In this document: positions 33,239 through 60,279 of the stretch, piece by piece | Numbering within the stretch: the first letter of the stretch is position 1 | How the letters are laid out: every line of letters begins with the position of its first letter | NCBI GenBank assembly: GCA_965112735.1 | Contig: OZ218952.1 | Coordinates: 1,488,001-1,552,000, forward strand | Source: Phaeosaccion multiseriatum | Taxonomy: Eukaryota > Protista > Ochrophyta, other classes | Reading direction: 5' to 3' | Length of the DNA: 64,000 bases | The notes under the pieces: model-generated | What the model saw: only the letters and a program-made list of their open reading frames with translations | What the model was told of the DNA's origin: nothing | The model's database searches: none | Made by a program: the position numbers and the translations under genes

Positions 33239-33781
33239 GGTGCGACCTCCTGGCTCTCAGCCCCTTGTTTAATCCAATCCCTCCCTCCTCTTTCCTCTGC
33301 CGTGGCAGCGTGCTGCTCCCTCTGTCGGCCTCTGTCCTCCCTCCTCCTTTCCCCCTCAAACTGCCATGCCCTACTCCCCTCCCTTTGACTATCGGCCGCC
33401 CTTGCCGCACCAACAGCAGCAACACCCTTTCTAACGCCGTTCTGTGCCGCAATCCTCCCAGCAAACCCCTCCTTAGCGTTGCTATCTCTGGCTTACGCTC
33501 CAGCACACCAACGGCCCTTTTTTCTTTTTTTCAAGATTCAGCCTCTTCCTTAAAAGTCGAGGAGTCCCACTTTCCTTGACTTCATTCCTGCGAAAGTGGC
33601 GAATCGGCGGCAGCCCCTTCATCACAAAAATGATAGCAGGTTTGGGGAGCAGCCGAGTGAGAGAGAGACACACACAGAAACAAAGAGAAGAGAGGAGGGA
33701 GGGGGGAACGGGCAGGGAAGGATAGAGTCGAAGCTATAGAAGCAGCAGGCACTAAGTGTTTGTGTTGTGACGCAAGTGGAT
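33239..33781. promoter_or_regulatory. Putative bidirectional promoter between SMC2 and RAD16-like
   Basis: 543 bp between two divergent ATGs (33238 minus, 33782 plus); inferred from geometry only. Confidence 0.5.
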
Positions 33782-35870
33782 ATGGCGGGAAGCGGCGGCG
33801 GCTCGAGCAGCGCGCCAAACAAGAGTCCTATTGTAATCGACGATACAGAAGAAGTAGAGACTATTGATGTTGACGATGAAGAAGATGCAGAGAAGGCCCC
33901 TCCAAAGTATCGCTATGTTGTGGAACTTGCCAAGAGTAAGAGGGCAGAGTGTCCACGCTGCGAGGAGAAGGTGGATAAGAATGAGATCCGGATCGGGATG
34001 GTGACACAAGGATCCTGGGGGCCCTCCACCAAATGGTCGCACCTCAAGTGCACAATCTTTCAGGTCGCGTCGGCCGAGCAAGTGGAGGGCTACGACGAGC
34101 TCTCGGCGGAGCATCAGGCGCTGGTCACCAAGCGGATCAAGGAGAGCCAGGGACAGGTCGACCCGGACCTGCAGCCCATTGACCCCGACGACCTTGTGCG
34201 GACCCAATGGACGAAGAAGCAGGACGAGCCGGACCAGCTCACCGCGTCCCTGCTTCCTTTCCAGAAGGAAGGCCTGGCGTGGATGTGCCACCAAGAGAAG
34301 AGCGAGTACAGGGGGGGCATCATCGCTGATGAGATGGGCATGGGCAAGACCATTCAGACCATCGCGCTCATGCTGGCCAACAGGGCCAAACCCGCTGACA
34401 AGAGCGAGCGCAAGGCGTGGTCGGCGCTCGAGGAGAGTATGGAGCGCGAGCCGGATGCCTCTCGCAGGGGCAAGACACTTGTGGTGTGCCCTGTGATTGC
34501 GCTCCTGCAGTGGAAGGCGGAAATAGAGCGCTTCACGGAGGAGGGTGCACTGACGGTGGCCATCCACCATGGGAACAAGCGCTCTACGGACGAGGACGAT
34601 CTGCTGGACGCCGATGTGGTGCTCACCACGTACTCCATCATCGAGGCGGAGTTCCGCAAGATGACGGCCAACGAAAAGGTGGCCTGCCCCGACTGCAACA
34701 GGCGGCTGTACCCAGACAAGATGATCCAGCATCGAAAGTACTTCTGCGGGGAGAAGGCCATACGGACTGCCGCTCAGTCCAAGACGGAGCGCCGCCCCAA
34801 GAAGAGGGAGCGCAAGGGGGGGGACGCTGATGATGATGAGCAGACCAGCGGGAAAGGGAAAGGAGGTGGGGGTTCATCGTCTGGGTCAGGTCAGACGACC
34901 AAACTTCCTTCTTCCAGCAGGAAAGCAAAGGCAGGGTCTACCGCTGTCAAGGGTACGCACGCAGATGAGGATGACGACAAGGACGACGAGGACGACGAGG
35001 AGGAGCAGGAGGGCGGCGAAACGGGCACTACGACTGCGCTGCCCGGTAACAGTCGGGGAAAGAGGAAGGGCAAGGGCAAGGGGAAGGCGCCCAAGGCCGG
35101 GGAAGAGAAAAGTGGAGTCAAAATGACCTCCATCCCCGCTCGCAAGGGGGGGGGGGCGTGGGGGACAGGGGGGCAGTAGTGGGAGTGGTGGGGGTCGAGG
35201 CACAGGCACCACCACCATGTCTCCGCCAGCAAAGAGCAAAGCAGCAGCGAAGAAGAAGAAAGGCAAGGGCAAGCGGAAGCGTGCCGCGGAGGAGGAGGAG
35301 GAGGACTCGGACTCGGAGGGTCATGGGGACAGCAGCAGCGACATCAGCAGCGAGGATAGTGCCGACGACTTTGAAACCACTTCGTTTTCGCGCAAACGTG
35401 ACAAGGGCGGGCAGAAGAAGGACAACAAGAAGGTCAAGACGACGACACTGCCGAAGAAAGGGAAGGGGGGCGAGACCGACAAGGGCATGCAGAAAATGAA
35501 GAAGAGAAAGAGCGTGAAGCGCAAGCGAAAGGGGGGAGGGAGGGGGGGCAGCAGCGGCGGTGGCGGTGGGGGTTACGACAGCAACAGCGACAGTAGCTTC
35601 GAGGGGGGGGGGAGCGACGACAGCGATGAGGAAGAGGAGGAGCTGGACAGCGAAGAGGATGAGCTCACGGTCAAGCTGTACGCCACAATGCAGGCAGCGG
35701 GGCCCCCCAGCGTGCTTCACGGCGTGTCTTGGCACCGCATAGGTAAGTCCGCCGTAAGCGGGCCTTTTTCTCGTGGTTTTTTCCCATGTTGGGTCCACCC
35801 GCTTCCTTCTCGGCGGGAGTGGGCCGAGGGGAGGGAGGAAGAGCCCCCCAAGCGCTTGCACTTTCCCTTT

Positions 35871-35919
<49 letters not shown>

Positions 35920-38029
35920 AGTATTTGGACTCCTTTGGGAAGACTCTTGTTGACGCGTGTTGCTTCGCGCTTCCCATATCCTCTTTGTGTGTGTGTGTGT
36001 GTGTGTGCGCGCGCGCGACACTGGTCAGTGCTGGACGAGGCGCACTACATCAAGGAGAGGAGCACCAGCACGGCCAAGGCCACCTTCGCGCTGACCTCCC
36101 TATACAAGTGGTGCCTCACGGGGACACCGTTGCAGAACCGCGTGGGCGAGCTGTACAGCCTAGTGCGCTTCCTCCGAGTGGACCCTCATGCCTACTACAA
36201 TTGCCGCAAGAAGGGCTGTGACTGCAAGAGTCTCAACTACCGCTTCGGACTCGAGGGTCGCTCGTGCGAGCAGTGCGGGCATGGCAAGATGATGCATTCG
36301 TGCTACTTTAACAAGCACATTCTCAACCCCATTCAGAGGACCGGCCCCATCGGAGAGGGCAAGAAGGCCTTCTTACACCTCAAGCAGGAAGTACTCGATA
36401 AAGTGCTGCTCAGAAGAACCAAGGCTTCGAGGTGAGTGAGGCCAAGGGAAGAGGAGGAGGAGGAGGAGCAGGAGCAGGAGGAGGAGGAGGAGGAGGAGGA
36501 GGAGGAGAAGGAGGAGGAGGAGGAGGAGGAGGAGGAGGAGGAGGAGGAGGAGGAGGAGGAGGAACGGATAAACGGAACGGGGAGATTGTGAGGTCGAGAT
36601 GGTGGTGCAAGTACTCAGGTGGAGACAGATGGGATCGAGCCGGTGAGAAACAATAGCCTTTCGTGTGTCTTGCTTGCCTCTGTATTTTCATGCCATTCAT
36701 ATCCTCCAATTGCTTGGCTATACTTGAACGCTCCGACTTGACTGTACCACCGCAGGAGTGAGGATATTTGCTTGCCTCCGAGGGTGGTGAGGGTGAGGAG
36801 CTTCCGACTGGACCCCGTGGAGGAGGACCTCTACAAGGCGCTGTACACGCGTAGCAAGACGCAGTTCAATACCTACGTCGACCAGGGGGTCATCCTCAAT
36901 AACTACGGTGAGCGAGTAGGACGTACTTGACCATCACACCCATTGAGCTCCACGATCCTCCTCCTGCTGCTGCCCTGGCTGCTTGTGCTCTTGTTTATAG
37001 TCCTCACACTTCGATCTGTCCTCCGTCCTCTGCTCTCTACCTTCTGCCCTCTGCCGCCCTCTGCCACCCTCTTCCCACTGTCCCCTCTCCTCCGCCCTCT
37101 GCTCACTGCCCGCTACCCTCTCTATCCTGTCGTCTGTGGATCCTCCCGTCTTGCTTGAATGGTCCTCTCCAGCGCACATCTTCGCATGCCTCTCCAAGCT
37201 CCGCCAAGCAGTGGACCACCCCTACTTGGTGGTGCACAGCAGCAGCAGCAGCGAGGGGGGCGGGGAGGCCGCATCAGGGGGTGGCTACTCAGGAGGAGCC
37301 GCCGAGAAAGACGTAGACGGAGACGGAGCAGAACCCCGGGACTGCGCCGTTTGCGACTCACCTGCGGAGGACGTGTTGCGCGCCAGATGCGGGCACTTCT
37401 TCTGCCGCGGCTGCGTGGAGGAGCTGCTGGCAGGCATGGGAGACGCGGGTGCCTTGGAGTGCCCGGCCTGCTCGGAGCCCCTCACCGTGAACCTCAACGA
37501 GGCCCCTTCTGCTGCTGCCACTCTTGTATCACCAACTGGTGGTGGTGGGGCGCGGGTGCGGAACGAGGACGAGGTGGTCGTGCCGGGCCTGCCCGACGGG
37601 ATGAAGCTCACCAGCATCTCCAAGAACTCGGTCATCAGCAAGGTGGGTTGGTGGGTGGGTGGGTGGGTTGGTGGATAGGTGGGAGGGAGGAGGGAGGGAG
37701 GGTGGATGGGTGGTGGGGTGGGGCGTGGGGCGTGGGGGTATGGGAAATTGATATTTTGTTGTGGGCTTGTTTCGTTGTGTGTCTTAAGTGTAAGAGTAAG
37801 GTGTGGTAGACCCCCCCCCACCACCACCTCCCCTGGCCCCCTTCTCCTCCGGTCATGACGCGGTACGGGGTGGGTGACGAGCAGCAGAATGTACGGTGCA
37901 CCCTGGGGTTGGACTGTCGGTGGTACACCTCTTCCCTCGTTTGTCCTCCGAATAGAACCATAACAAGCTTGCTTCCAGACTAAACTAAAAACAAGTTTCC
38001 AATCTGTGGCGCATGCATGCCACACTCAC

Positions 38030-38110
<81 letters not shown>

Positions 38111-38881
38111 GATCTGCGCAGCTTCCAAACGAGCACAAAGATGGAGGCCCTCATGCAAGCACTGCACGACATGCAGCGAAAGGACCCGTCGGCCAAGGCC
38201 ATCGTCTTCTCCCAGTTCGTCAACATGCTGGACCTGCTCGAGTTCCGCATCAAGCAAGGGGGCATTCACTGCGTCAAGCTGAGCGGGGGCATGAGCATGG
38301 ACAAGCGCGATGTGGTGCTAAGGGCCTTCCGAGAGAAGCCGGAAGTCAAGGTACTGCTCATCAGCCTCAAGGCCGGAGGGGTGGCGCTGAATCTCACCGT
38401 GGCCAACTACATTTTCCTCATGGACCCATGGTAAGAAGGCTTGTTTGCCGATCCATGTTTATTAACACAGCAAATGCGACCGGGGTGCTTGCTTGGGGCC
38501 TTACCAGAGAAGGCCAGAGGAGTCTCACGGTGCCCCTCATGGGAGCCTCAAGTAGGCCGGGGGGGGAGTGGCGCTGAAACGTCTGACATCTCGAACCCAT
38601 GCGCGAACAAATTTAAACTCCCGCCCTCATACGGACCCACCCACCCACCCACCCACCCCAGGTGGAATGGCGCTGCCGAGATGCAGGCCATCGATCGCAC
38701 CCACCGCATGGGGCAGACCAAGCCCATCTTCGCCACGCGTTTCATCATCGAGGACACGATTGAGGAGCGCATTGTGCGGCTGCAGGAGAAGAAGCGCCTC
38801 GTGTTTGACGGGACGGTGGGCGGCTCAGCAGCGTCGCTCGCGCAACTGACGGTGGACGACCTTCGATTTCTCTTCCAGTGA
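33782..38881 (+). CDS. RAD16: RAD16-like SNF2 helicase/RING protein with N-terminal PARP-type zinc finger; apparent 1-nt frameshift in a G run at about 35146-35156
   Basis: zf-PARP ([16 protein letters not shown]...IRIG...KWSHLKC). Helicase motifs [49 protein letters not shown]. Rad16-type [88 protein letters not shown]. Confidence 0.92.
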
Positions 38882-38972
38882 GAAGAGGGAGGGTGTGCGA
38901 GAGAGGAAAGACAAATGGATTCTTATGTTCGTGTGTGCGGTACTGTTTGTTGTATTTACACATTATAAAAAC

Positions 38973-39028
38973 AAATCTCTAAACATATCCTGTCCCCGAC
39001 ATCAAATCTCTAAACATGTCCTGTCCCC
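38973..39028. repeat. About 31-bp period direct repeat (AAATCTCTAAACAT[A/G]TCCTGTCCCCG) between convergent 3' ends
   Basis: Two copies with one mismatch, read directly. Confidence 0.75.
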
Positions 39029-39075
39029 GCCACCCATCCATCGACAACATATAAACAAAAGACTGGAGGTCTAGC

Positions 39076-40239
39076 TCAGCGGGATTCAACCCTGGCCTTG
39101 ATTGGGTAGGTCATGGGGCCCGTGTTCTTGATGATGATGGTGCATCCGTAGCCAGGAGTCTCGAGCACTGCAGAAAAGGGGCGCATTGCTCCGTCATCAG
39201 TAGAGACCTCCGCTAGTTGTCGCAGACTGCCGGGGCCTTGCAGAACCTCGACAGTGGCCTGGATGGGCAGGCCCTCGGACCAAAGTGAGATTCGCACGTT
39301 GTTCACAGAGGCATGAACGGGAAAGTATTGCAGGGAGTCTCCTTGGATAGTGCGTCCATAACCTCCTACAGCACCGCCATAGGAACCGTGGAAACCAGAG
39401 CCGAAGCCGGAGCTATAGCCAGAGCCGTAGGAGCCGGAGCCGTAGGAGCCGGAGCCGTAGGAACCGGAGCCGTAGTGGTGGTGGTTACCGTGGAAGCCGG
39501 AAGAGTAAAAGCTGCCGCTGCCACTGCCTCGGCCACTACCACGCACACCGGCCGCCAATGGGAACTCCATAGGCCCACCGTTTCGAATCTCGACCACGCC
39601 TCCTCGACCCCCGGGTGTGTCAACAATGGAGCGGAAGGGGCGGGCAAGTCCGTCTTCGCTCCAGACCTTGATCCGCTGGGGCGCGTGGTTGGGACCTTCC
39701 CAGACCTGAAGATCAGCGGTCAGGGGTGTTCCGTTCGTCTCTAAAAGCACTTGCTGCTGCTCTTGGTTGTAATGTCTACCCCATGAGAGGCGAGAGCCTC
39801 CCTGCATTTCCTGGAGTCCGTCGCGGCGTCCTCCCCAGAAAGATTGCCGGCCGCCAGCATAGGAGTTGTGGCGGTACCCGCCCTCGCGATAGTTGTCGCG
39901 GCCTCCACCCCAGAAGGACTGTCCGCCGTGCTGCTGAAGGCCATAGCCGTTATTGTCCCGCCGGATGATGCTCCCCTGCGACCCGACGGTGTTGATGTTG
40001 CGGATGCGCTCGTTCGACCTTGGCTCGTAGTACTGTTGCTGGCCGTTGTAGTTGTAGCCACCAATAGGCGTGGCCTGTCGAACAACGCTGCTCACAGCGT
40101 TGTTGACATTGTGGTGCCGTCCTTGGTTCTGGTTACTCTGGTAACGATCTGTGAAGGTCGTAACCTGAGAAGGAGAAAAGGCGGTGGCCTGGTGCCACAC
40201 GCAGAAGGCCAGGACACTCGCGAGGTAGGTGTTCATCAT
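39076..40239 (-). CDS. Intronless PyShell (pyrenoid shell)-like protein: bipartite plastid presequence, G/Y/N/R-rich extension, two tandem homologous beta-rich domains
   Basis: Signal peptide then ATA|FSP (ASAFAP-like). Internal duplication: MQGGSRLSW..QVLLETNGTPLTADLQVWEGP..IKVWSEDGLARPFRSIVDTPGG..EIRNGGPMEFPLAAGV versus IQGDSLQYF..VRISLWSEGLPIQATVEVLQGP..EVSTDDGAMRPFSAVLETPGY..IIKNTGPMTYPIKARV. This matches my recollection of the diatom/haptophyte QGGSLRTW..GRPL..GP..RPF..ETP..N..EFP family that I associate with PyShell; not search-verified. Confidence 0.7.
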   Translation of the reverse strand: MMNTYLASVLAFCVWHQATAFSPSQVTTFTDRYQSNQNQGRHHNVNNAVSSVVRQATPIGGYNYNGQQQYYEPRSNERIRNINTVGSQGSIIRRDNNGYGLQQHGGQSFWGGGRDNYREGGYRHNSYAGGRQSFWGGRRDGLQEMQGGSRLSWGRHYNQEQQQVLLETNGTPLTADLQVWEGPNHAPQRIKVWSEDGLARPFRSIVDTPGGRGGVVEIRNGGPMEFPLAAGVRGSGRGSGSGSFYSSGFHGNHHHYGSGSYGSGSYGSGSYGSGYSSGFGSGFHGSYGGAVGGYGRTIQGDSLQYFPVHASVNNVRISLWSEGLPIQATVEVLQGPGSLRQLAEVSTDDGAMRPFSAVLETPGYGCTIIIKNTGPMTYPIKARVESR

Positions 40240-41281
40240 GGTGTGTTGCTGTGTGTCGAGTCGAAGTTGATTGTGATGGGGTTTCCCTTCTCCCCCGTCC
40301 CTTCTCTCGTTCTATCTTTGTAACGAAGAATAGAGCAGCACTCTTGGATAGAGGGTTGGTCAGACAAAAAAGGGCGGTATATATCTATTGCCCGTTCCCA
40401 GTTTCAGTAGCGGCCACGTCACAAAAACAGAAAGCAACCGAAACATTTACTGCTAGTAACCCGTTACTTACTGCAACTTCTCTTATAGCAGCCCCCCCCC
40501 CCCAGCGTTGAGACTGGACCTTTTTATTCGGTACGCCAACACGCGAACAGTCTTGGCGGGGCCGGCGGAGGGGCGACCCAAATGGAGTGACCTTATCGTA
40601 GTTCTGAGGAAAACCCTGATAGCAGCCAGCCAGCCAGCACCCGAATTGAAGGGCGGGTTTCCCTCTCTGCGAAGCCGGTGCTACTCTGAGTAGGGCAAAA
40701 GAGATCATCGAGAGGCACATGATGGTGGAGGAGGTGGACACCATCATGTGGGATCAGATCATGGCGAGCGCGAAAGCCCTGGCTTCTCTCCTGGCGCCGC
40801 TTTGAGCGAGTATGGGCGGAGACAGACAAGCGCTAGCGGCGGAAGCAAGAACCTCACAGGGCACACTCCAGCTGAAGTTTGGAACCAATGCCTGCCAGAA
40901 ACAGCATGCACCTCATCATACCACCACGCACACACAGCTTGCAGCACCTTGCTCCCTTCTGTACGGAGTTAGTTAGACAGGTGTTTAGCCTTTCGGTGCC
41001 CCCGCCCTTAGGTTGATTCGCGGACGCTCCAGAACACCCCACGTGTACTTGCAAGATGCGCTTCTAAGAAGTACGCGGTCTTGCCTCGTTCTCCTGCCTT
41101 GTCGTCATCGGAGCGTCGTGGTTGCCCCCCCCCCCACCGGCCGCTCCTTAAACCTTATCTTGCACATCACTTGTCTTGTCGGACGCCTTGGTGTATCCGG
41201 CTTGTCCCGAACCCCTCCCTTCAGCGAGGCTGCGAGGGCGGTAGCAGCAGCAGCAGCAGCCGCAGCAGAGAAATTACCGCT

Positions 41282-41510
41282 GCTGCCGACCCCTGACGTA
41301 CTACCTGGCTGCTACCGCTGGTGTCAGCCGGCCTTTGACCCCCTACCGGCCGACCCCCTGACGTGCTAGCTACCGAGCGATTCTCAATAGCATGCTACCG
41401 GGCCCTCCGCACCCGGTAGCACACTACTGGCGGCCGGCCGGTAGCAGGTAGCACGCCAGGTCACGCCAGCGGTAGCAGGTAGCAGCTAGCTTACGTCGGC
41501 GGTGGCAGCT
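41282..41510. mobile_element. Foldback/MITE-like element with nested imperfect inverted repeats
   Basis: TGCTACCGCTGG (41310-41321) pairs with CCAGCGGTAGCA (41466-41477). Outer GCTGCC..GACGTA pairs with TACGTC..GGCAGC. Central hairpin TGCTACCGGG-9nt-CCCGGTAGCA (41393-41421). Confidence 0.5.
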
Positions 41511-42336
41511 GATGGACTGGTTGGCCGGCCGGCCGGTCGAGCAGAGGCCTTGGCACGGGGAGAGGGGATGCCTGGGCTCGCCGAGGAGCCTTCCGAGCGG
41601 CAGAGGCAGGGCCAGCGAGACCCGCGGGGGAAGGGGGTAGTCTGGCTGCTAGGAACGGTGGGCCGGTGGGCTTGAGACTCCAGGCTAATAGCTAGGCCTT
41701 GTACGGAGACTAAGGCGACATGGAGAGAACTCTGTACGTCCTACTAGTCGGTGTGCCTCCCGCCGAGGGCATAGCCCGAGGGAGGCTTGTGTTACACTCC
41801 CTGGCTCTCCGGGGTGGTGTGGAGTGTCAAAGAGTGTTGTGTGCTAAGCATGTTGGAATCCGTCGCCCGTCGCCTCTTGGAAGTTTGAAACTACACCCTT
41901 CTAGTCGCAGGTGATGGATGGATTGGAAAGTATGGTGAAGGTTGATAGGCAACAACAAGAACATGATCTTCCCTCCGCTGGTGGTAGTCTGGAGTGTGTG
42001 TAGCAACACCCCATCATCAGCCAGGAGTATCATGCATTTTTTCCGACTTTTATTCCTTACGTACTGCTCAGTGTGAGGGGACTTGCTCCTTGGGGAGGGA
42101 GAAGAAGAGGAGAAAGACGAACACGAGGAGGACGAAGATACGTGGGCAAACACCATCACTCACTTCTCTTTTCGCCGAGCGATTCCCTTGCCGGATAAAA
42201 CAAACATTACGTAAGGGTTCTACAACCCAGGGGGGTTTTGTCTCGTTCACGCTGACGAGACCTTCAAGCTTAAGTCCAGTTTAAAGGCTTTAGGGGGACT
42301 CAGCCTACTACACCACCGACTGGACCACAGCCAACC

Positions 42337-43317
42337 ATGAAGGCCTTCCTCGGGAGTCTCCTGTCGCTCTGCGTGTGTCTGGGAGTGGTCACTGCATTGA
42401 ATGTCGGTCAGCAGACGACCTTTAGGCTTGACAATGGGTGGGGTGGATATGGCCCCCGTAATTCTGTCGACCAAGGCATCTACTACGGGAACGGGCTGAA
42501 TCGATACGGGGGGGGGGGCTATCGCAACAACTATGTGGACCGTTCCTACGGCTACGACCGCTACGACGATTTTCCTAACGACAGATGGGGTTACTACAAC
42601 AATGGGCGATACCAGCCCAGGAGAAGGGAAGACTTGCTCAGGAATGTCAACACTGTAGGCCAGGGCACCACAATCACGCTCGCCAACCCTGGATATGGGA
42701 GATCGGGGTACGGCGGCGGGTACCACAACAATTATGATCGGTACGACTCGAACAGGTGGAGGGAAGACAACAATCGGCTGGCGAGCTTCTGGTTGGCCAA
42801 TCCTGTGGACCGAATCAACCGCGGTGGCTACAACAATGGTTACTACAACAATGGCTACAACCAGCTGAACAGCGGCGGTTACAACCGCAATGTCAATACG
42901 ATTGGCAACCAGGGCAGCATTATTCGAAGTGGCTATGGCAACTATGGCAGCAATTACTATGGGCCCGGCTCAAACCAGTACTGGGGCTCCAACTCTTACG
43001 ACGGCGGGACCTTCCGCGGGGAGACGTACAACTTGTACCGCGGCGGGAACTACTATGGCAACGGCTGGGGAAATCAGTGGGGAGGGAACGGGTGGGGCAA
43101 CGGGTACGACTCGTACAACAATTACCGAGGCGGCAACTATTACGGCAACGGGTGGGGGAACGATTACAGGGGAGGGCCATACCGCAATGGCTACAACAGT
43201 GGGTACTACAACAATGGGTACAACAATGGGTACTACAACAATGGCTACAACAATGGCTACAACCGCGGGGGGTTCTGGGGACCAGACCGAGGTGGAAACG
43301 CGCATCTCCTCTACTGA
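42337..43317 (+). CDS. Intronless signal-peptide protein, almost entirely G/N/Y/R/W low-complexity (prion-like); candidate pyrenoid/condensate protein
   Basis: 326-aa ORF in a good ACCATG context. MKAFLGSLLSLCVCLGVVTA|LNVG signal. Repeats GYYNNGYN, YRGGNYYGNGWGN x2, RNVNT[VI]G.QG x2. No globular domain. Confidence 0.85.
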   Translation: MKAFLGSLLSLCVCLGVVTALNVGQQTTFRLDNGWGGYGPRNSVDQGIYYGNGLNRYGGGGYRNNYVDRSYGYDRYDDFPNDRWGYYNNGRYQPRRREDLLRNVNTVGQGTTITLANPGYGRSGYGGGYHNNYDRYDSNRWREDNNRLASFWLANPVDRINRGGYNNGYYNNGYNQLNSGGYNRNVNTIGNQGSIIRSGYGNYGSNYYGPGSNQYWGSNSYDGGTFRGETYNLYRGGNYYGNGWGNQWGGNGWGNGYDSYNNYRGGNYYGNGWGNDYRGGPYRNGYNSGYYNNGYNNGYYNNGYNNGYNRGGFWGPDRGGNAHLLY

Positions 43318-46042: not shown

Positions 46043-47361
46043 ATGGCGGAGGCGGCTTTAGACATTGAGGTAAGATCTCTTCTGTGGGGAGTCCCGGCCC
46101 TTCGCCTTGAGGCCCAGCCTATTTTCTCGTATATGTATGCATGTTCCTCCCCTTTGTATCCATTGGTCCTGGCGCCCTACCCTTGGGTCAAGGCGAAAGC
46201 TCACGGCCTCCCGGGCCTCCCTCCTTGCCCTGGTCTGCACAGGGGGTGCGACTTGGTGAGGCCATAGTGATGGGGGCGGCTGCAGCAGAGGTCAAGGCGA
46301 TGGTGGCGAAGCTCGTCTCCAAGACGGGCAAAGCACGCCTGGACAAACCGATAGATACGTTCGGATGTACCGCGATGACCATGGCGGCGGAGATTGGTCG
46401 AGCAGACTGTATGGATATCCTCGTCTCAGCTGGAGCGAGTGTGGATCAGGCGGATGGTGTTGGACTCACTCCGCTCTTTATCGCATCTCGGGCCGGATTT
46501 CTCTCAGTTGTGGAGGCGCTTCTTTCGGCCAGCGCCAGTGTGCATTCGTTATCTCAGAGGACCACTCCGCTCTACATAGCTTCTGCACGAGGGCATGCTG
46601 CAGTGGTGGGGGCACTTCTTTCGGCCAAGGCGAATGTGAACTTGATGGACGAGGTGGATCGATGCACTCCGCTTTGTATCGCGTCTCAGGCGGGTCACGT
46701 GTTAGTGGTGCATCGCCTCATCTCAGCAGGCGCACTCCTCGATGGAGGCGACAGTTCCGGAGGCACTCCGCTGTACTCCGCTGTGAATAATGGGCAGGCA
46801 GCGGTAGTGGACAAGCTTCTGTCGGCTGGTGCCGGAGTGGACGCGATGAATTGCGAGGGTTGGACTCCTCTCGTACTCGCCTCTATGACAGGCCACGATG
46901 AAATAGTGGAGCGGCTTCTCCGTGCTGGTGCGAAGGTGGATTATGGGGGGGCCCGCTTTGGCTTCACCCCTCTTCACTTTGCTGCTCGCTATGGGCACGG
47001 GGCAGTGGTGGCCCGTCTTCTCGATGCAGGGTGTCCATGTGATGTGTTGGCCACGTGTGGCTCTCCCCCATTACTCGCTGCCGCCGTCGCTGACCAACAT
47101 GGGACGGTTCAGCAGCTCCTCTCCGCCGGAGCCTCGGTGGACATTGCCCTGGCCTGTGTGCAGCAGAATGATGAGTACCCTGAGGCCGAAGGTACGAAGC
47201 AGAGCCTCCTCGCCGCAGCAAGGGAGCACTTCGCATCGCAGACTGCCCTGGACCTGATGCGCGCAACCGACCCCACCTTTGGCAAGGAGAGGGGCGTACC
47301 GCCGCAGGAGAGGGACGTTCACTCTGAGACCATGCTCGAGGTGGCTTTGGAAATGGCCTAA
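46043..47361 (+). CDS. Ankyrin-repeat protein; short exon 1 (46043-46069) + exon 2 (46243-47361)
   Basis: About 8 repeats of G.TPL..A...G...VV..LL.AGA.VD. GTAAG donor at 46070 and CAG acceptor at 46242, in frame. Confidence 0.9.
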
Positions 47362-58217: not shown

Positions 58218-58530
58218 GATGAGGAAGAAGAAAGGAAAAGAAAAAAAACGTAACCCAGGGGGGTCACGGCGAGAGGTGCAACTCCCAAGTCAAGAAAAAA
58301 ATGACCCGACCCACCACAAACCACTGCGGCATGCGCTGATTTTTCCCTCCCTTTCACCTAGTGCCACTCCATCCTCCCCCACAGAAAGAGTAGCTTTAGG
58401 CGTCTGTCTGTCCCTATCCAAAGCAGGGTCGGCTGCGCGGGAGCTCGGGAGGTTAGAATAATACCTCTTCGGTATTGAGCTTGAAGAGACGAAGAGGTCT
58501 GAAAAGAAAGGAGAGGGATAGATCGTAGTG

Positions 58531-60279
58531 ATGGCACACTTCAGACGCTGTACGTCCAGCAGCGGGCCGGCGCGAGGCCTTTCTTCGTGTGTGAAGCCGT
58601 GGCTCCTGGCTGCTCTCTGTGTGGTGGGCTCATCATCGGCTTCGGCAGGTTTCGGCCAGGCGGAATTCTTGGGAAACAAGGCTTCAGTGGATGGGGCACG
58701 TCCAGCAGCATCATCTGGTGGGGGAGTGGATGCGTCGAGCGCTAAGCATCATCACTTTGCCTTGGAAGGGGCCTACGCTGCTGTCTCAGCCCCAGCAGGG
58801 GGTTCTGCGACTCACTCCTTCGTCTCGCAACAACGGCTCCTCGGGCCTTTTGGTGATAGGAACCAAAGGACGTTGCAGGAGGAGGAGGAGGACCATGACT
58901 CACACGACGAGGGGGAGGAGCACGATTCGCACGAGGACGAGGACCACGAGGACGAGGAGCACGACTCCGACGAGTTCACCAGCCACGATCACGATATGGA
59001 CGGCTACAACGACCACACGCAGGACGGGGGCGATGAGCACGACTCCGATGAATTCACCAGCCACGATCACGATATGGACGGCTACAACGACCACACGCAG
59101 GATGGGGGCGATGAGCACACAGACCACGACTCCCACGACCACGACTCCCACGACCATGACGAAGAGCACGACAGCCACGACGACGTTGCCAGTGGAGGGG
59201 TGGAGGGAGAGGCGGACAGCCACGACAGCCACGAGGGACACGACCACGGAGACGAGGAGGAGCTTGCGTTGGGAGGAGTAGGAGATGTCTCTGTGGACCG
59301 GAACAAGCCCTGGGGCCGGGCCATCGGAGCCGCCCTCTTGGTCAACCTTGCCACTCTCGTTGGTGTCATCTTCCTGGGACCGGGCAGCAAGCTCCTCGGC
59401 ATGCGAGGAAACAGCTTGAGTGACCGCTGCCATGCGATCCTGTACTCCTTCGCCGCTGGCGCTCTCCTCGCAGCGGCATTCTTTCTGCTGCTTTTGGAGT
59501 CCTCTCACCTGATTCAGGGTTCCTTCAGCGACGAGAACGATGTTTCCTGGAGGTGGGGCACGAGTGTGCTGGCGGGGTACATGGTGTCCTTTGTTGGCGA
59601 CCTGGTCACCTCTGCTTTCCACAAGTACACCAGTCGTGGGAGTACGGAGACAGCCGCGGGGGCCATGTCAGCCTCTAACGAGACCACCACTATCGCTGAA
59701 GAGGAGGCAGGACAGCCGAGGGTGGTGTCTTCCACTCCGCAGCAGGGCCTCGAGAAGCCGGGGCTGCAGCAAGACATACAGACCATGATGCGGGTTCGAT
59801 TCGGTGTGCTGGTCGGAGACTTCTTGCACAACTTCGTCGACGGTGTCTTTATCGGGGCTGGCTTCATGCTCTGCGGTGAGGCCAAGGGCTGGGCCATCGC
59901 CGCCGGGACCATTTACCACGAGCTCGCGCAGGAGTTTGCCGACTTCTTCACCCTCACCGGCATTGGAGGTATGAAGCCTTTCTCCGCGCTGGCCTTGAAC
60001 TTCGTGTCCGGACTCTCCGTCGTGGCTGGCGTGATTGTGGTGCTCGCCTCGGATGTGTCCGACGTCACGCTCGGGGTGCTGCTGGCGTTCGGCGCAGGCG
60101 TGTACATTCACGTGGCCGCCTCCGAGAGTCTGCCCAAGGTGTATGCAAGCGTAAATACCATCCAGGACCGATTGTGCGCCCTTGTTGCCTTCATGGTTGG
60201 TGCCACAACCATCGGGCTCGTGCTGCTGGACCACGGCCACTGCACGGCCGGGGGGGCGCACGCCGGACACAACCACTGA
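58531..60279 (+). CDS. Intronless ZIP (SLC39, LIV-1-like) zinc/metal transporter with His/Asp/Glu-rich N-terminal ectodomain
   Basis: Signal-like WLLAALCVVGSSSASAG; TM motifs SFAAGALLAAAFFLLLLES, GDFLHNFVDGVFIG, YHELAQEFADF, LAFGAGVYIHVAASESLP; His-rich C-terminal tail HGHC..HAGHNH. Confidence 0.93.
   Translation: MAHFRRCTSSSGPARGLSSCVKPWLLAALCVVGSSSASAGFGQAEFLGNKASVDGARPAASSGGGVDASSAKHHHFALEGAYAAVSAPAGGSATHSFVSQQRLLGPFGDRNQRTLQEEEEDHDSHDEGEEHDSHEDEDHEDEEHDSDEFTSHDHDMDGYNDHTQDGGDEHDSDEFTSHDHDMDGYNDHTQDGGDEHTDHDSHDHDSHDHDEEHDSHDDVASGGVEGEADSHDSHEGHDHGDEEELALGGVGDVSVDRNKPWGRAIGAALLVNLATLVGVIFLGPGSKLLGMRGNSLSDRCHAILYSFAAGALLAAAFFLLLLESSHLIQGSFSDENDVSWRWGTSVLAGYMVSFVGDLVTSAFHKYTSRGSTETAAGAMSASNETTTIAEEEAGQPRVVSSTPQQGLEKPGLQQDIQTMMRVRFGVLVGDFLHNFVDGVFIGAGFMLCGEAKGWAIAAGTIYHELAQEFADFFTLTGIGGMKPFSALALNFVSGLSVVAGVIVVLASDVSDVTLGVLLAFGAGVYIHVAASESLPKVYASVNTIQDRLCALVAFMVGATTIGLVLLDHGHCTAGGAHAGHNH

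Follow-up and report, generated by a model that had tools for sequence, protein, structure and literature searches.

Do two neighboring genes, one resembling the gene for a pyrenoid shell protein and the other encoding a prion-like disordered protein, form a pyrenoid pair joined by a short peptide that both products carry? The question is raised by positions 39076 to 43317 of a 64-kb stretch of contig OZ218952.1 (called the window here), which is eukaryotic DNA with a G+C content of ~58%. Two complete, uninterrupted open reading frames (ORFs) lie there in head-to-head orientation. An earlier interpretation made from the DNA letters and their translations (the sequence-only reading) had described them as intronless and ~2.1 kb apart; the coordinates of both ORFs hold, and their start codons are 2097 bp apart. 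We refer to the minus-strand gene as gene A and to the plus-strand gene as gene B.

39076..40239, minus strand: gene A, PyShell family protein, 387 amino acids (aa), a single ORF (Pfam PF25192, phmmer, Foldseek)
42337..43317, plus strand: gene B, orphan disordered protein, 326 aa (ORF, codon usage, no Pfam or PDB match)
40240..42336, no strand: divergent spacer, 2097 bp, presumed shared promoter region, with no convincing ORF inside

PyShell proteins are known from diatoms, haptophytes, pelagophytes, and a number of further algae with red plastids (10.1101/2023.10.25.564039; 10.1101/2023.10.26.564148; PMC13655443). On its sequence and its modeled fold, gene A is almost certainly a genuine member of this family. 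The sequence-only reading had called its product divergent and PyShell-like and had proposed comparing positions 39076 to 40239 with PyShell by hidden Markov model (HMM) and by structure prediction; both comparisons were run, and sequence and fold both match. The Pfam profile PF25192 (DiatomPyrShell) matches residues 143 to 385 with an E value of 5.6e-57 (193 bits; cut-off, 27), and the match spans nearly the entire profile (positions 7 to 208 of 209). A phmmer search against the solved PyShell structure of Thalassiosira pseudonana (PDB 8wqp_A) gave an E value of 3.2e-40 over two stretches, which correspond to the two conserved regions of the family (CR1 and CR2), and an HMM of the half-domain matches the protein twice, at 110.8 and 113.4 bits. 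In an AlphaFold2 (AF2) model built from an alignment of 24 homologues, both half-domains have predicted local distance difference test (pLDDT) values above 90, and CR1 and CR2 give the two-sheet beta fold that defines the family. The best Foldseek match of this model in the PDB is again 8wqp_A (E value of 5e-23, template modeling [TM] score of 0.78, root mean square deviation of 3.1). Given such matches, the word "divergent" understated the relationship. Taken alone, gene A is a new member of an established family, and six-frame searches of the window found no second PyShell gene. The parts of gene A are as follows.

39085..39357, minus strand: half-domain CR2, residues 295 to 385 (HMM), followed by 2 residues and so by no C-terminal tail
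39358..39540, minus strand: disordered CR1-CR2 loop, G/S/Y/H-rich, 61 aa (pLDDT ~40)
39541..39813, minus strand: half-domain CR1, residues 143 to 233 (half-domain HMM 110.8 bits, pLDDT >90)
39814..40179, minus strand: disordered N-terminal extension, residues 21 to 142 (~120 aa), isoelectric point (pI) 10.3, no Lys (pLDDT ~40, composition)
40180..40239, minus strand: signal peptide, residues 1 to 20, with a cleavage-type site ATA/FSP (read by eye; the slash marks the site)

Ochrophyte plastid proteins carry a bipartite presequence of the ASAFAP type, and the cleavage site of A fits this type. Read by eye, its presequence consists of a hydrophobic segment ending in ...HQATA/FSP and then an S/T-rich basic stretch, and the protein has no further long hydrophobic segment, as would be expected of a plastid protein with a bipartite presequence and no transmembrane helix. 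The N-terminal extension that follows is covered by no homologue in the alignment. The loop between the half-domains is the longest among the 25 family members compared, the others having 13 to 50 aa, and a 15-nt tandem repeat (39417 to 39475) lies within it. Most PyShell homologues continue past CR2 in a tail of 18 to 135 aa; A does not, and neither do 4 of the 24 homologues (P0004, P0012, P0016, and P0024). Compared with the diatom PyShell (PF25192; TpPyShell1, 8wqp; Shimakawa et al. 2024, Nam et al. 2024), A thus has the same CR1 and CR2, the same two-sheet fold, a disordered N-terminus, and a bipartite plastid presequence. It differs in coming from a non-diatom ochrophyte and being at most 41% identical to any library protein, in having the 61-aa G/S/Y-rich loop where TpPyShell1 has a short helix, in lacking a C-terminal tail, and in bearing on its N-terminal tail a private peptide that is common to the neighboring gene.

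That peptide belongs to a larger module shared by the two genes. Residues 1 to 145 of A and 1 to 168 of B align collinearly at 33% identity, with a common order of signal peptide, Q[VQ]TTF just past the cleavage site, Y.PR...RN[IV]NT[IV]G.QG, and SFW. Both genes had been described as encoding a signal peptide followed at position +1 by F (in A) or L (in B), and inspection by eye agrees, the hydrophobic, signal-peptide-like segment of B reading ...GVVTA/LNV. A BLASTP comparison of A with B returned 16/34 identities over the motif, with an E value of 8e-5. The local alignment of the disordered N-terminus of A with B scores 132, compared to 66 +/- 10 (maximum, 105) for composition-preserving shuffles, none of which reached the observed score (0/2000; n = 2000). 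Within the module, three units of ~65 aa, one in A and two in B, are 39 to 43% identical, and each contains one copy of a peptide core.

40196..40236, minus strand: arm 1 of an inverted DNA repeat, the signal-peptide codons of A from the second ATG (41 nt, 80% complementary to arm 2)
42337..42377, plus strand: arm 2 of this repeat, the signal-peptide codons of B, in register with both start codons
39865..40062, minus strand: shared unit of A, ~65 aa, residues 60 to 125 (43% and 39% identity to the two B units)
39961..40002, minus strand: motif core of A, RNINTVGSQGSIIR, residues 80 to 93 (pattern, codon comparison)
39829..39921, minus strand: two QSFWGG stickers of A, residues 107 to 112 and 132 to 137 (sequence)
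42574..42816, plus strand: unit 1 of B, residues 80 to 160, with core RNVNTVGQGTTIT at 42640 to 42678 and ASFW (unit alignment)
42829..43026, plus strand: unit 2 of B, residues 165 to 230, with core RNVNTIGNQGSIIR at 42886 to 42927 and QYWG (unit alignment)

Since the N-terminal homology is collinear and the signal-peptide DNA forms an inverted repeat in register, the signal peptide and N-terminal tail of the two genes are very probably paralogous, having arisen by inverted partial duplication. The signal-peptide DNA (synonymous divergence [dS], 0.33) is less diverged than the rest of the shared module, where dS is saturated; local gene conversion could account for this, as could codon bias or constraint.

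We then asked what has happened to the core since the duplication. The motif positions given by the sequence-only reading are exact, with RNINTVGSQGSII at 39964 to 40002 (minus strand), RNVNTVGQGTTI from 42640 (plus strand), and RNVNTIGNQGSIIR at 42886 to 42927 (plus strand). All three copies fit a 14-aa consensus, RN[IV]NT[IV]G.QG[ST][IT]I. Between the core of A and the second copy in B, 11 of the 14 codons differ, 8 of them by synonymous and 3 by nonsynonymous changes. In a Nei-Gojobori comparison of A with the first copy in B, nonsynonymous divergence (dN) is 0.22 in the core and 0.9 to 1.0 in the flanking disordered sequence, while dS is saturated or undefined. Because the core is a conserved island amid drifting flanks and saturated synonymous sites, we conclude with good confidence from these codon comparisons that it is under purifying selection; it looks like a selected linear motif. 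The FW motifs that had been pointed out in both proteins are likewise present, as QSFWGG twice in A and as ASFWLA and GGFWGP in B, which also has NQYWGS.

The core appears to be confined to this locus. A degenerate DNA pattern for RN[IV]NT[IV]G has 3 matches in the window, only at the three known sites (0 matches in 100 shuffles used as a control), and a six-frame search of the window found no further copy of the core. None of the 24 PyShell homologues contains it, either by regular expression or by an HMM of the unit, and scans of the JGI metagenomes with degenerate DNA patterns gave 0 matches. The proposal that the shared peptide is lineage specific is in agreement with these results, the peptide being private to A and B across the protein libraries, the 24 homologues, and the JGI metagenomes. 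Nor did we find in the literature a description of a selected peptide common to a PyShell tail and a disordered partner. One candidate origin, a mimic or relic of the hairpin of a PyShell half-domain, was rejected because the half-domain HMM scores only -2.8 bits on the motif of B and because hhalign of the unit profile against 50 half-domains gave a probability of 0.1%; the best half-domain HMM match in B does fall exactly on the motif, at that nonsignificant score.

Gene B is the prion-like disordered partner that the sequence-only reading had described, a sticker-rich orphan. Its product comprises 22% G, 19% N, 16% Y, 9% R, and 3% W (48 Tyr, 28 Arg, and 10 Trp residues; G+Y+N, 57%), has no Lys, and has a pI of 9.3. 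An AF2 model has a mean pLDDT of 36 and no secondary structure beyond the signal-peptide helix (residues 4 to 19), which is the disorder asked of the linker class (EPYC1, PYCO1, and CsLinker) under the FLIPPer criteria (PMC11570498). That class also has conserved interaction elements that recur every 20 to 120 residues, with 5 to 6 copies in known linkers; B has two units, their cores 82 residues apart, and beyond the units lies a further repetitive region in which the copies of YRGGNYYGNGWGN are ~30 residues apart.

43027..43314, plus strand: C-terminal Y/G/N/W repeats of B, with YRGGNYYGNGWGN twice, a GYNN/GYYNN run, and GGFWGP (repeat and composition scan)

B is likely a real gene: among the six frames, the annotated one scores best for codon usage, its G+C content at third codon positions (GC3) is 0.73 compared to 0.47 at the remaining positions, and its choice of synonymous codons agrees with that of the confident genes of the window. 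It has no match in Pfam or the PDB. A word-indexed search of 5.8 billion proteins, a collection in which neither A nor B is itself present, yielded 6361 word-sharing candidates but no relative of B among them. An exhaustive HMMER profile search of 1.84 billion representatives with B and its unit returned 3 matches, all to unrelated tandem-repeat proteins, which were rejected because their scores were summed from many weak stretches of tandem repeats. Look-alikes of B in the ESM Atlas (arthropod cuticle and GYR proteins, score of 0.80, below the meaningful level of 0.9) were likewise set aside as resembling B in composition only.

Disordered sequence of this composition is also found within the PyShell family itself. 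G/Y/N-rich disordered regions (at least 45% G+Y+N over at least 40 aa) are present in 10 of the 24 homologues, where they are 45 to 77 aa long, and 9 of the 10 are C-terminal tails. These tails belong to P0006, P0007, P0014, P0017 to P0020, P0022, and P0023, several of them finishing in ...GGYQYN, while P0024 has its G/Y/N-rich region in the inter-domain loop. In a tree of the domain only, A is sister to a six-protein clade (ultrafast bootstrap support, 89; Shimodaira-Hasegawa approximate likelihood ratio test, 83). All six members have a G/Y/N tail fused after CR2, whereas A is tail-less and has B, with its 57% G+Y+N, adjacent. This pattern, fused elsewhere and separate here, moderately supports a functional link between A and B, as a likeness of composition and not as true homology. 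The sister clade (P0014, P0018 to P0020, P0022, and P0023) has conserved N-terminal peptides of its own, such as S[VP]WGP.SEQ and DASFGDNAA. Because that clade, too, keeps its own conserved peptide in a disordered N-terminus, these alignments suggest that functional clade-specific linear motifs may be a general feature of PyShell tails. Repeats with a sticker-like look occur as well at the C-termini of P0005 (PPRYGEN[YF]GGRYLPP twice) and P0007 (NSMERYG twice). In the PyShell literature, we found no discussion of G/Y/N tails or of clade-specific N-terminal peptides.

What, then, might the two genes do together? The explanation that we favor, tentatively and with somewhat less than even confidence, is that A and B are a pyrenoid pair and that a common partner recognizes the core of both. 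Following the inverted duplication of the 5' part, B grew into a basic, Lys-free, Tyr/Arg/Trp-rich disordered protein with two copies of the unit. Both proteins would enter the plastid, which for B is suggested by the L at +1 and by the homology of its presequence to that of A. The core would then be a short peptide by which both proteins dock to a single partner at the pyrenoid boundary. Where A is assembled into the shell lattice, its flexible N-terminal tail could present this peptide as a dense array, and soluble B, with its two copies and many aromatic and arginine stickers, could bridge the partner and condense through weak Tyr-Arg/Trp contacts, in this way gluing the shell to what lies beneath. 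That B works in or on the pyrenoid is, from its sequence, a possibility we place just short of an even chance.

If Chlamydomonas, with its shared Rubisco-binding motif, is taken as a guide, the partner would most likely be Rubisco, in the matrix; docking on the shell lattice or pairing of peptide with peptide would be the next options. Taken by itself, however, binding of the core peptide to Rubisco is doubtful. Similarly, we consider it rather unlikely that the core binds form ID Rubisco or a matrix scaffold in such a way that the same sticker stitches the shell and lets B cross-link the matrix. Under such a stitching arrangement, the G/Y/N tails fused to other PyShells would be a fused version of the same design.

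The analogy can be set out against what is known of other pyrenoids. In Chlamydomonas, as cited in 10.1101/2023.10.26.564148, one Rubisco-binding motif is common to linker and boundary proteins. The locus described here resembles that system (EPYC1, SAGA1/2, RBMP1/2; Meyer et al. 2020) in that a disordered repeat protein (here B, with two copies) has a short peptide in common with a boundary or structural protein (here A, with one copy in its PyShell tail). It differs in that the Chlamydomonas motif is helical and Trp/Arg based while the present one is probably extended, in lineage and Rubisco form, and in that there are two carriers here, whose binding is putative.

In Phaeodactylum, PYCO1 is a prion-like repeat protein in which KWSP, through its Trp, serves Rubisco binding and GTGYNP, through its Tyr, serves self-condensation; KWSP binds the small subunit and is found in no other Phaeodactylum protein except a short PYCO1 isoform (PMC10288592). 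Like PYCO1, B is basic, prion-like, and disordered, with short Trp and Tyr motifs in G/N/Y-rich sequence. However, it has no sequence homology to PYCO1 and no KWSP, none of its 10 Trp residues standing in such a context; it has two copies of its unit, 82 aa apart, compared to six PYCO1 stickers; and its motif is common to a shell protein, whereas KWSP is confined to PYCO1 and its isoform. No homology of B to a known linker was detected in Pfam, the PDB, or the protein libraries. Between linkers of different lineages, homology is not expected.

In T. pseudonana, contact between shell and matrix is regarded as indirect and as probably involving Shell4 and DPC3, and no homologue or functional analogue of PYCO1 has been identified (10.1101/2023.10.26.564148). 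B would fill the same niche as DPC3 and Shell4, in which a non-shell protein, or a minor paralogue of the shell proteins, connects the shell with the Rubisco matrix. By its description alone, DPC3 differs in being folded and has been structurally compared with Shell proteins, while B is of low complexity.

Several observations weigh against a pyrenoid pair with a common partner. The first concerns the sharing of the motif. The interpretation put forward in the sequence-only reading stands in its PyShell identity, its disordered orphan, and its private, selected peptide, but the sharing itself is explained by the inverted duplication. Since the two genes have the motif in common by descent, its presence in both proves nothing; only its selective retention argues for function. 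Second, stromal import of B is not assured, since its +1 residue is L and not F and since acidic residues follow the signal region. Third, the motif has only two known carriers, and its two copies in B would mean a low valency for a linker, which counts against the role of matrix linker that the sequence-only reading proposed for B. Fourth, AF2 leaves the peptide of A undocked on the PyShell domain in cis, with a pLDDT of ~40 over residues 1 to 137; this result is weak or uninformative, given that the alignment of A has no depth over the N-terminal region. Finally, at 4 PyShell homologue loci (L001 to L004), inspected for up to 10 kb on each side where the contig allowed, no neighboring ORF shares sequence with the disordered PyShell tails, whereas in the window this test does pick out B.

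Some of these points would also fit a different history, in which B was left over from the local duplication and took up work elsewhere, for example as a Gly/Tyr-rich structural protein that is secreted or resides at the cell surface or in the periplastidial compartment. In that case, the role of the conserved peptide would have nothing to do with the pyrenoid; in A it might, for instance, be a processing or sorting signal. We consider this unlikely, although it fares best among the alternatives. It would be consistent with the L at +1, with the two Asp residues that come soon after the signal peptide, with the absence of a conserved pairing at the four other PyShell loci compared, and with the language-model look-alikes, the nearest of which are secreted proteins of the arthropod cuticle/GYR type, albeit at a score (0.80) below the meaningful one. 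Yet B shares a homologous presequence with A, a plastid shell protein, and the homology extends into the Q.TTF past the cleavage site; L at +1 is reportedly among the residues accepted for diatom plastid import (a rule said to go back to Gruber and colleagues in 2007 and to ASAFind). Moreover, many species have PyShell domains with G/Y/N-rich regions fused to them, and the second copy of the motif lies at residue 184 of B, far past any targeting peptide.

We also regard it as quite unlikely that the core, instead of binding Rubisco, serves shell assembly, whether by docking on the PyShell lattice or by self-pairing in the manner of a beta-hairpin-like zipper. The peptide would then replace the C-terminal tail that A lacks and that in TpPyShell1 stabilizes the lattice, and B would coat the shell or act on it as a bivalent staple. 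Such a role is suggested by the end of A 2 residues past CR2, where most homologues have tails of 18 to 135 aa, and by the C-terminal tail of TpPyShell1, which contacts a pocket of the neighboring monomer (10.1101/2023.10.25.564039). By eye, moreover, the core alternates hydrophobic and polar residues around the G.QG turn as a hairpin might, and the best half-domain HMM match in B, though nonsignificant, lies on the motif. Against this, that match reaches only -2.8 bits, the hhalign probability of the unit against half-domains is 0.1%, AF2 leaves the peptide undocked, four other homologues are tail-less as well, and the motif is found in 0/24 homologues. That B is nonfunctional, either as a duplicate in decay or as an ORF that arose by chance where repetitive DNA has few stops, is very unlikely: although overlapping ORFs of 171 to 242 aa exist in other frames and on the other strand and no homologue was found in the protein libraries searched, codon usage favors the annotated frame over the other five, its GC3 is 0.73 compared to 0.47, the signal peptide is intact, and retention of the core amino acids across saturated synonymous sites requires translation in frame.

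The sequence around the pair was surveyed as well. TGACGT/C elements are CO2 responsive and known from Phaeodactylum promoters (PMC11142338); in the spacer between A and B, which the sequence-only reading took to be co-regulated, they are not enriched (3 compared to 1.57 expected; P = 0.21). TGACGT alone, with 3 occurrences compared to 0.69 expected from the window average, is mildly high, and we do not count it as evidence. The center of the spacer (41309 to 41478) contains a 57-nt inverted repeat (74%) rich in GGTAGC/GCTACC words, beside which a 17-mer, CCCCTGACGT.CTA.CT, is duplicated at 41290 and 41355; this structure might represent either a small mobile element or a regulatory one. A tblastn match of CR1 to spacer DNA at 41561 to 41686 (36% over 42 aa; E value of 0.068) was treated as chance, since it is an Ala/Arg/Gly-rich translation of GC-rich DNA and is not collinear with B.

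The 3' flank of gene A contains a tandem duplication of 30 nt (93% identity) at positions 38972 to 39032 of the window. Beyond it, a convergent multi-exon gene on the plus strand (33767 to 38881), RAD16/RAD5-like with zf-PARP, SNF2, RING, and helicase C-terminal domains, ends ~195 bp from the stop codon of gene A; it contains a (CA)n microsatellite at ~38020 to 38100 that is probably intronic. The best named matches of its SNF2 exon are to Phaeothamnion confervicola (62%) and Ectocarpus (58%), and because of these matches we assign the genome to an ochrophyte near the brown-algal (PX) group and not to a diatom. Downstream of B, the plus strand has an ankyrin-repeat gene at 46141 to 47361. An ankyrin-repeat gene also lies directly downstream of the PyShell homologue P0016 (10904 to 11299 of L002, an unrelated contig), which is probably a coincidence. 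Further along, an ORF with a ZIP zinc-transporter domain is found at 58528 to 60279 on the plus strand (Pfam E value of 3.7e-25).

PyShell was described only in 2024, and how the shell is attached to the matrix and how Rubisco is condensed in most algae with red plastids are questions on which this locus bears. It offers a concrete handle on them, namely, a selected 14-residue peptide on the flexible tail of a shell protein together with an adjacent orphan disordered protein. If the peptide binds neither Rubisco nor the shell, what remains is one more ordinary PyShell gene and its lineage-specific duplicate. If it binds either one, pyrenoid engineering would gain a compact tag with which to tether shell and matrix. 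Were the stitching arrangement described above true, it would be the first case among red-plastid algae of an "address and glue" peptide of the pyrenoid that is common to the shell and to a soluble disordered scaffold. Beyond this locus, the recurrent pairing of G/Y/N-rich disorder with PyShell domains is an observation that extends to the wider family.

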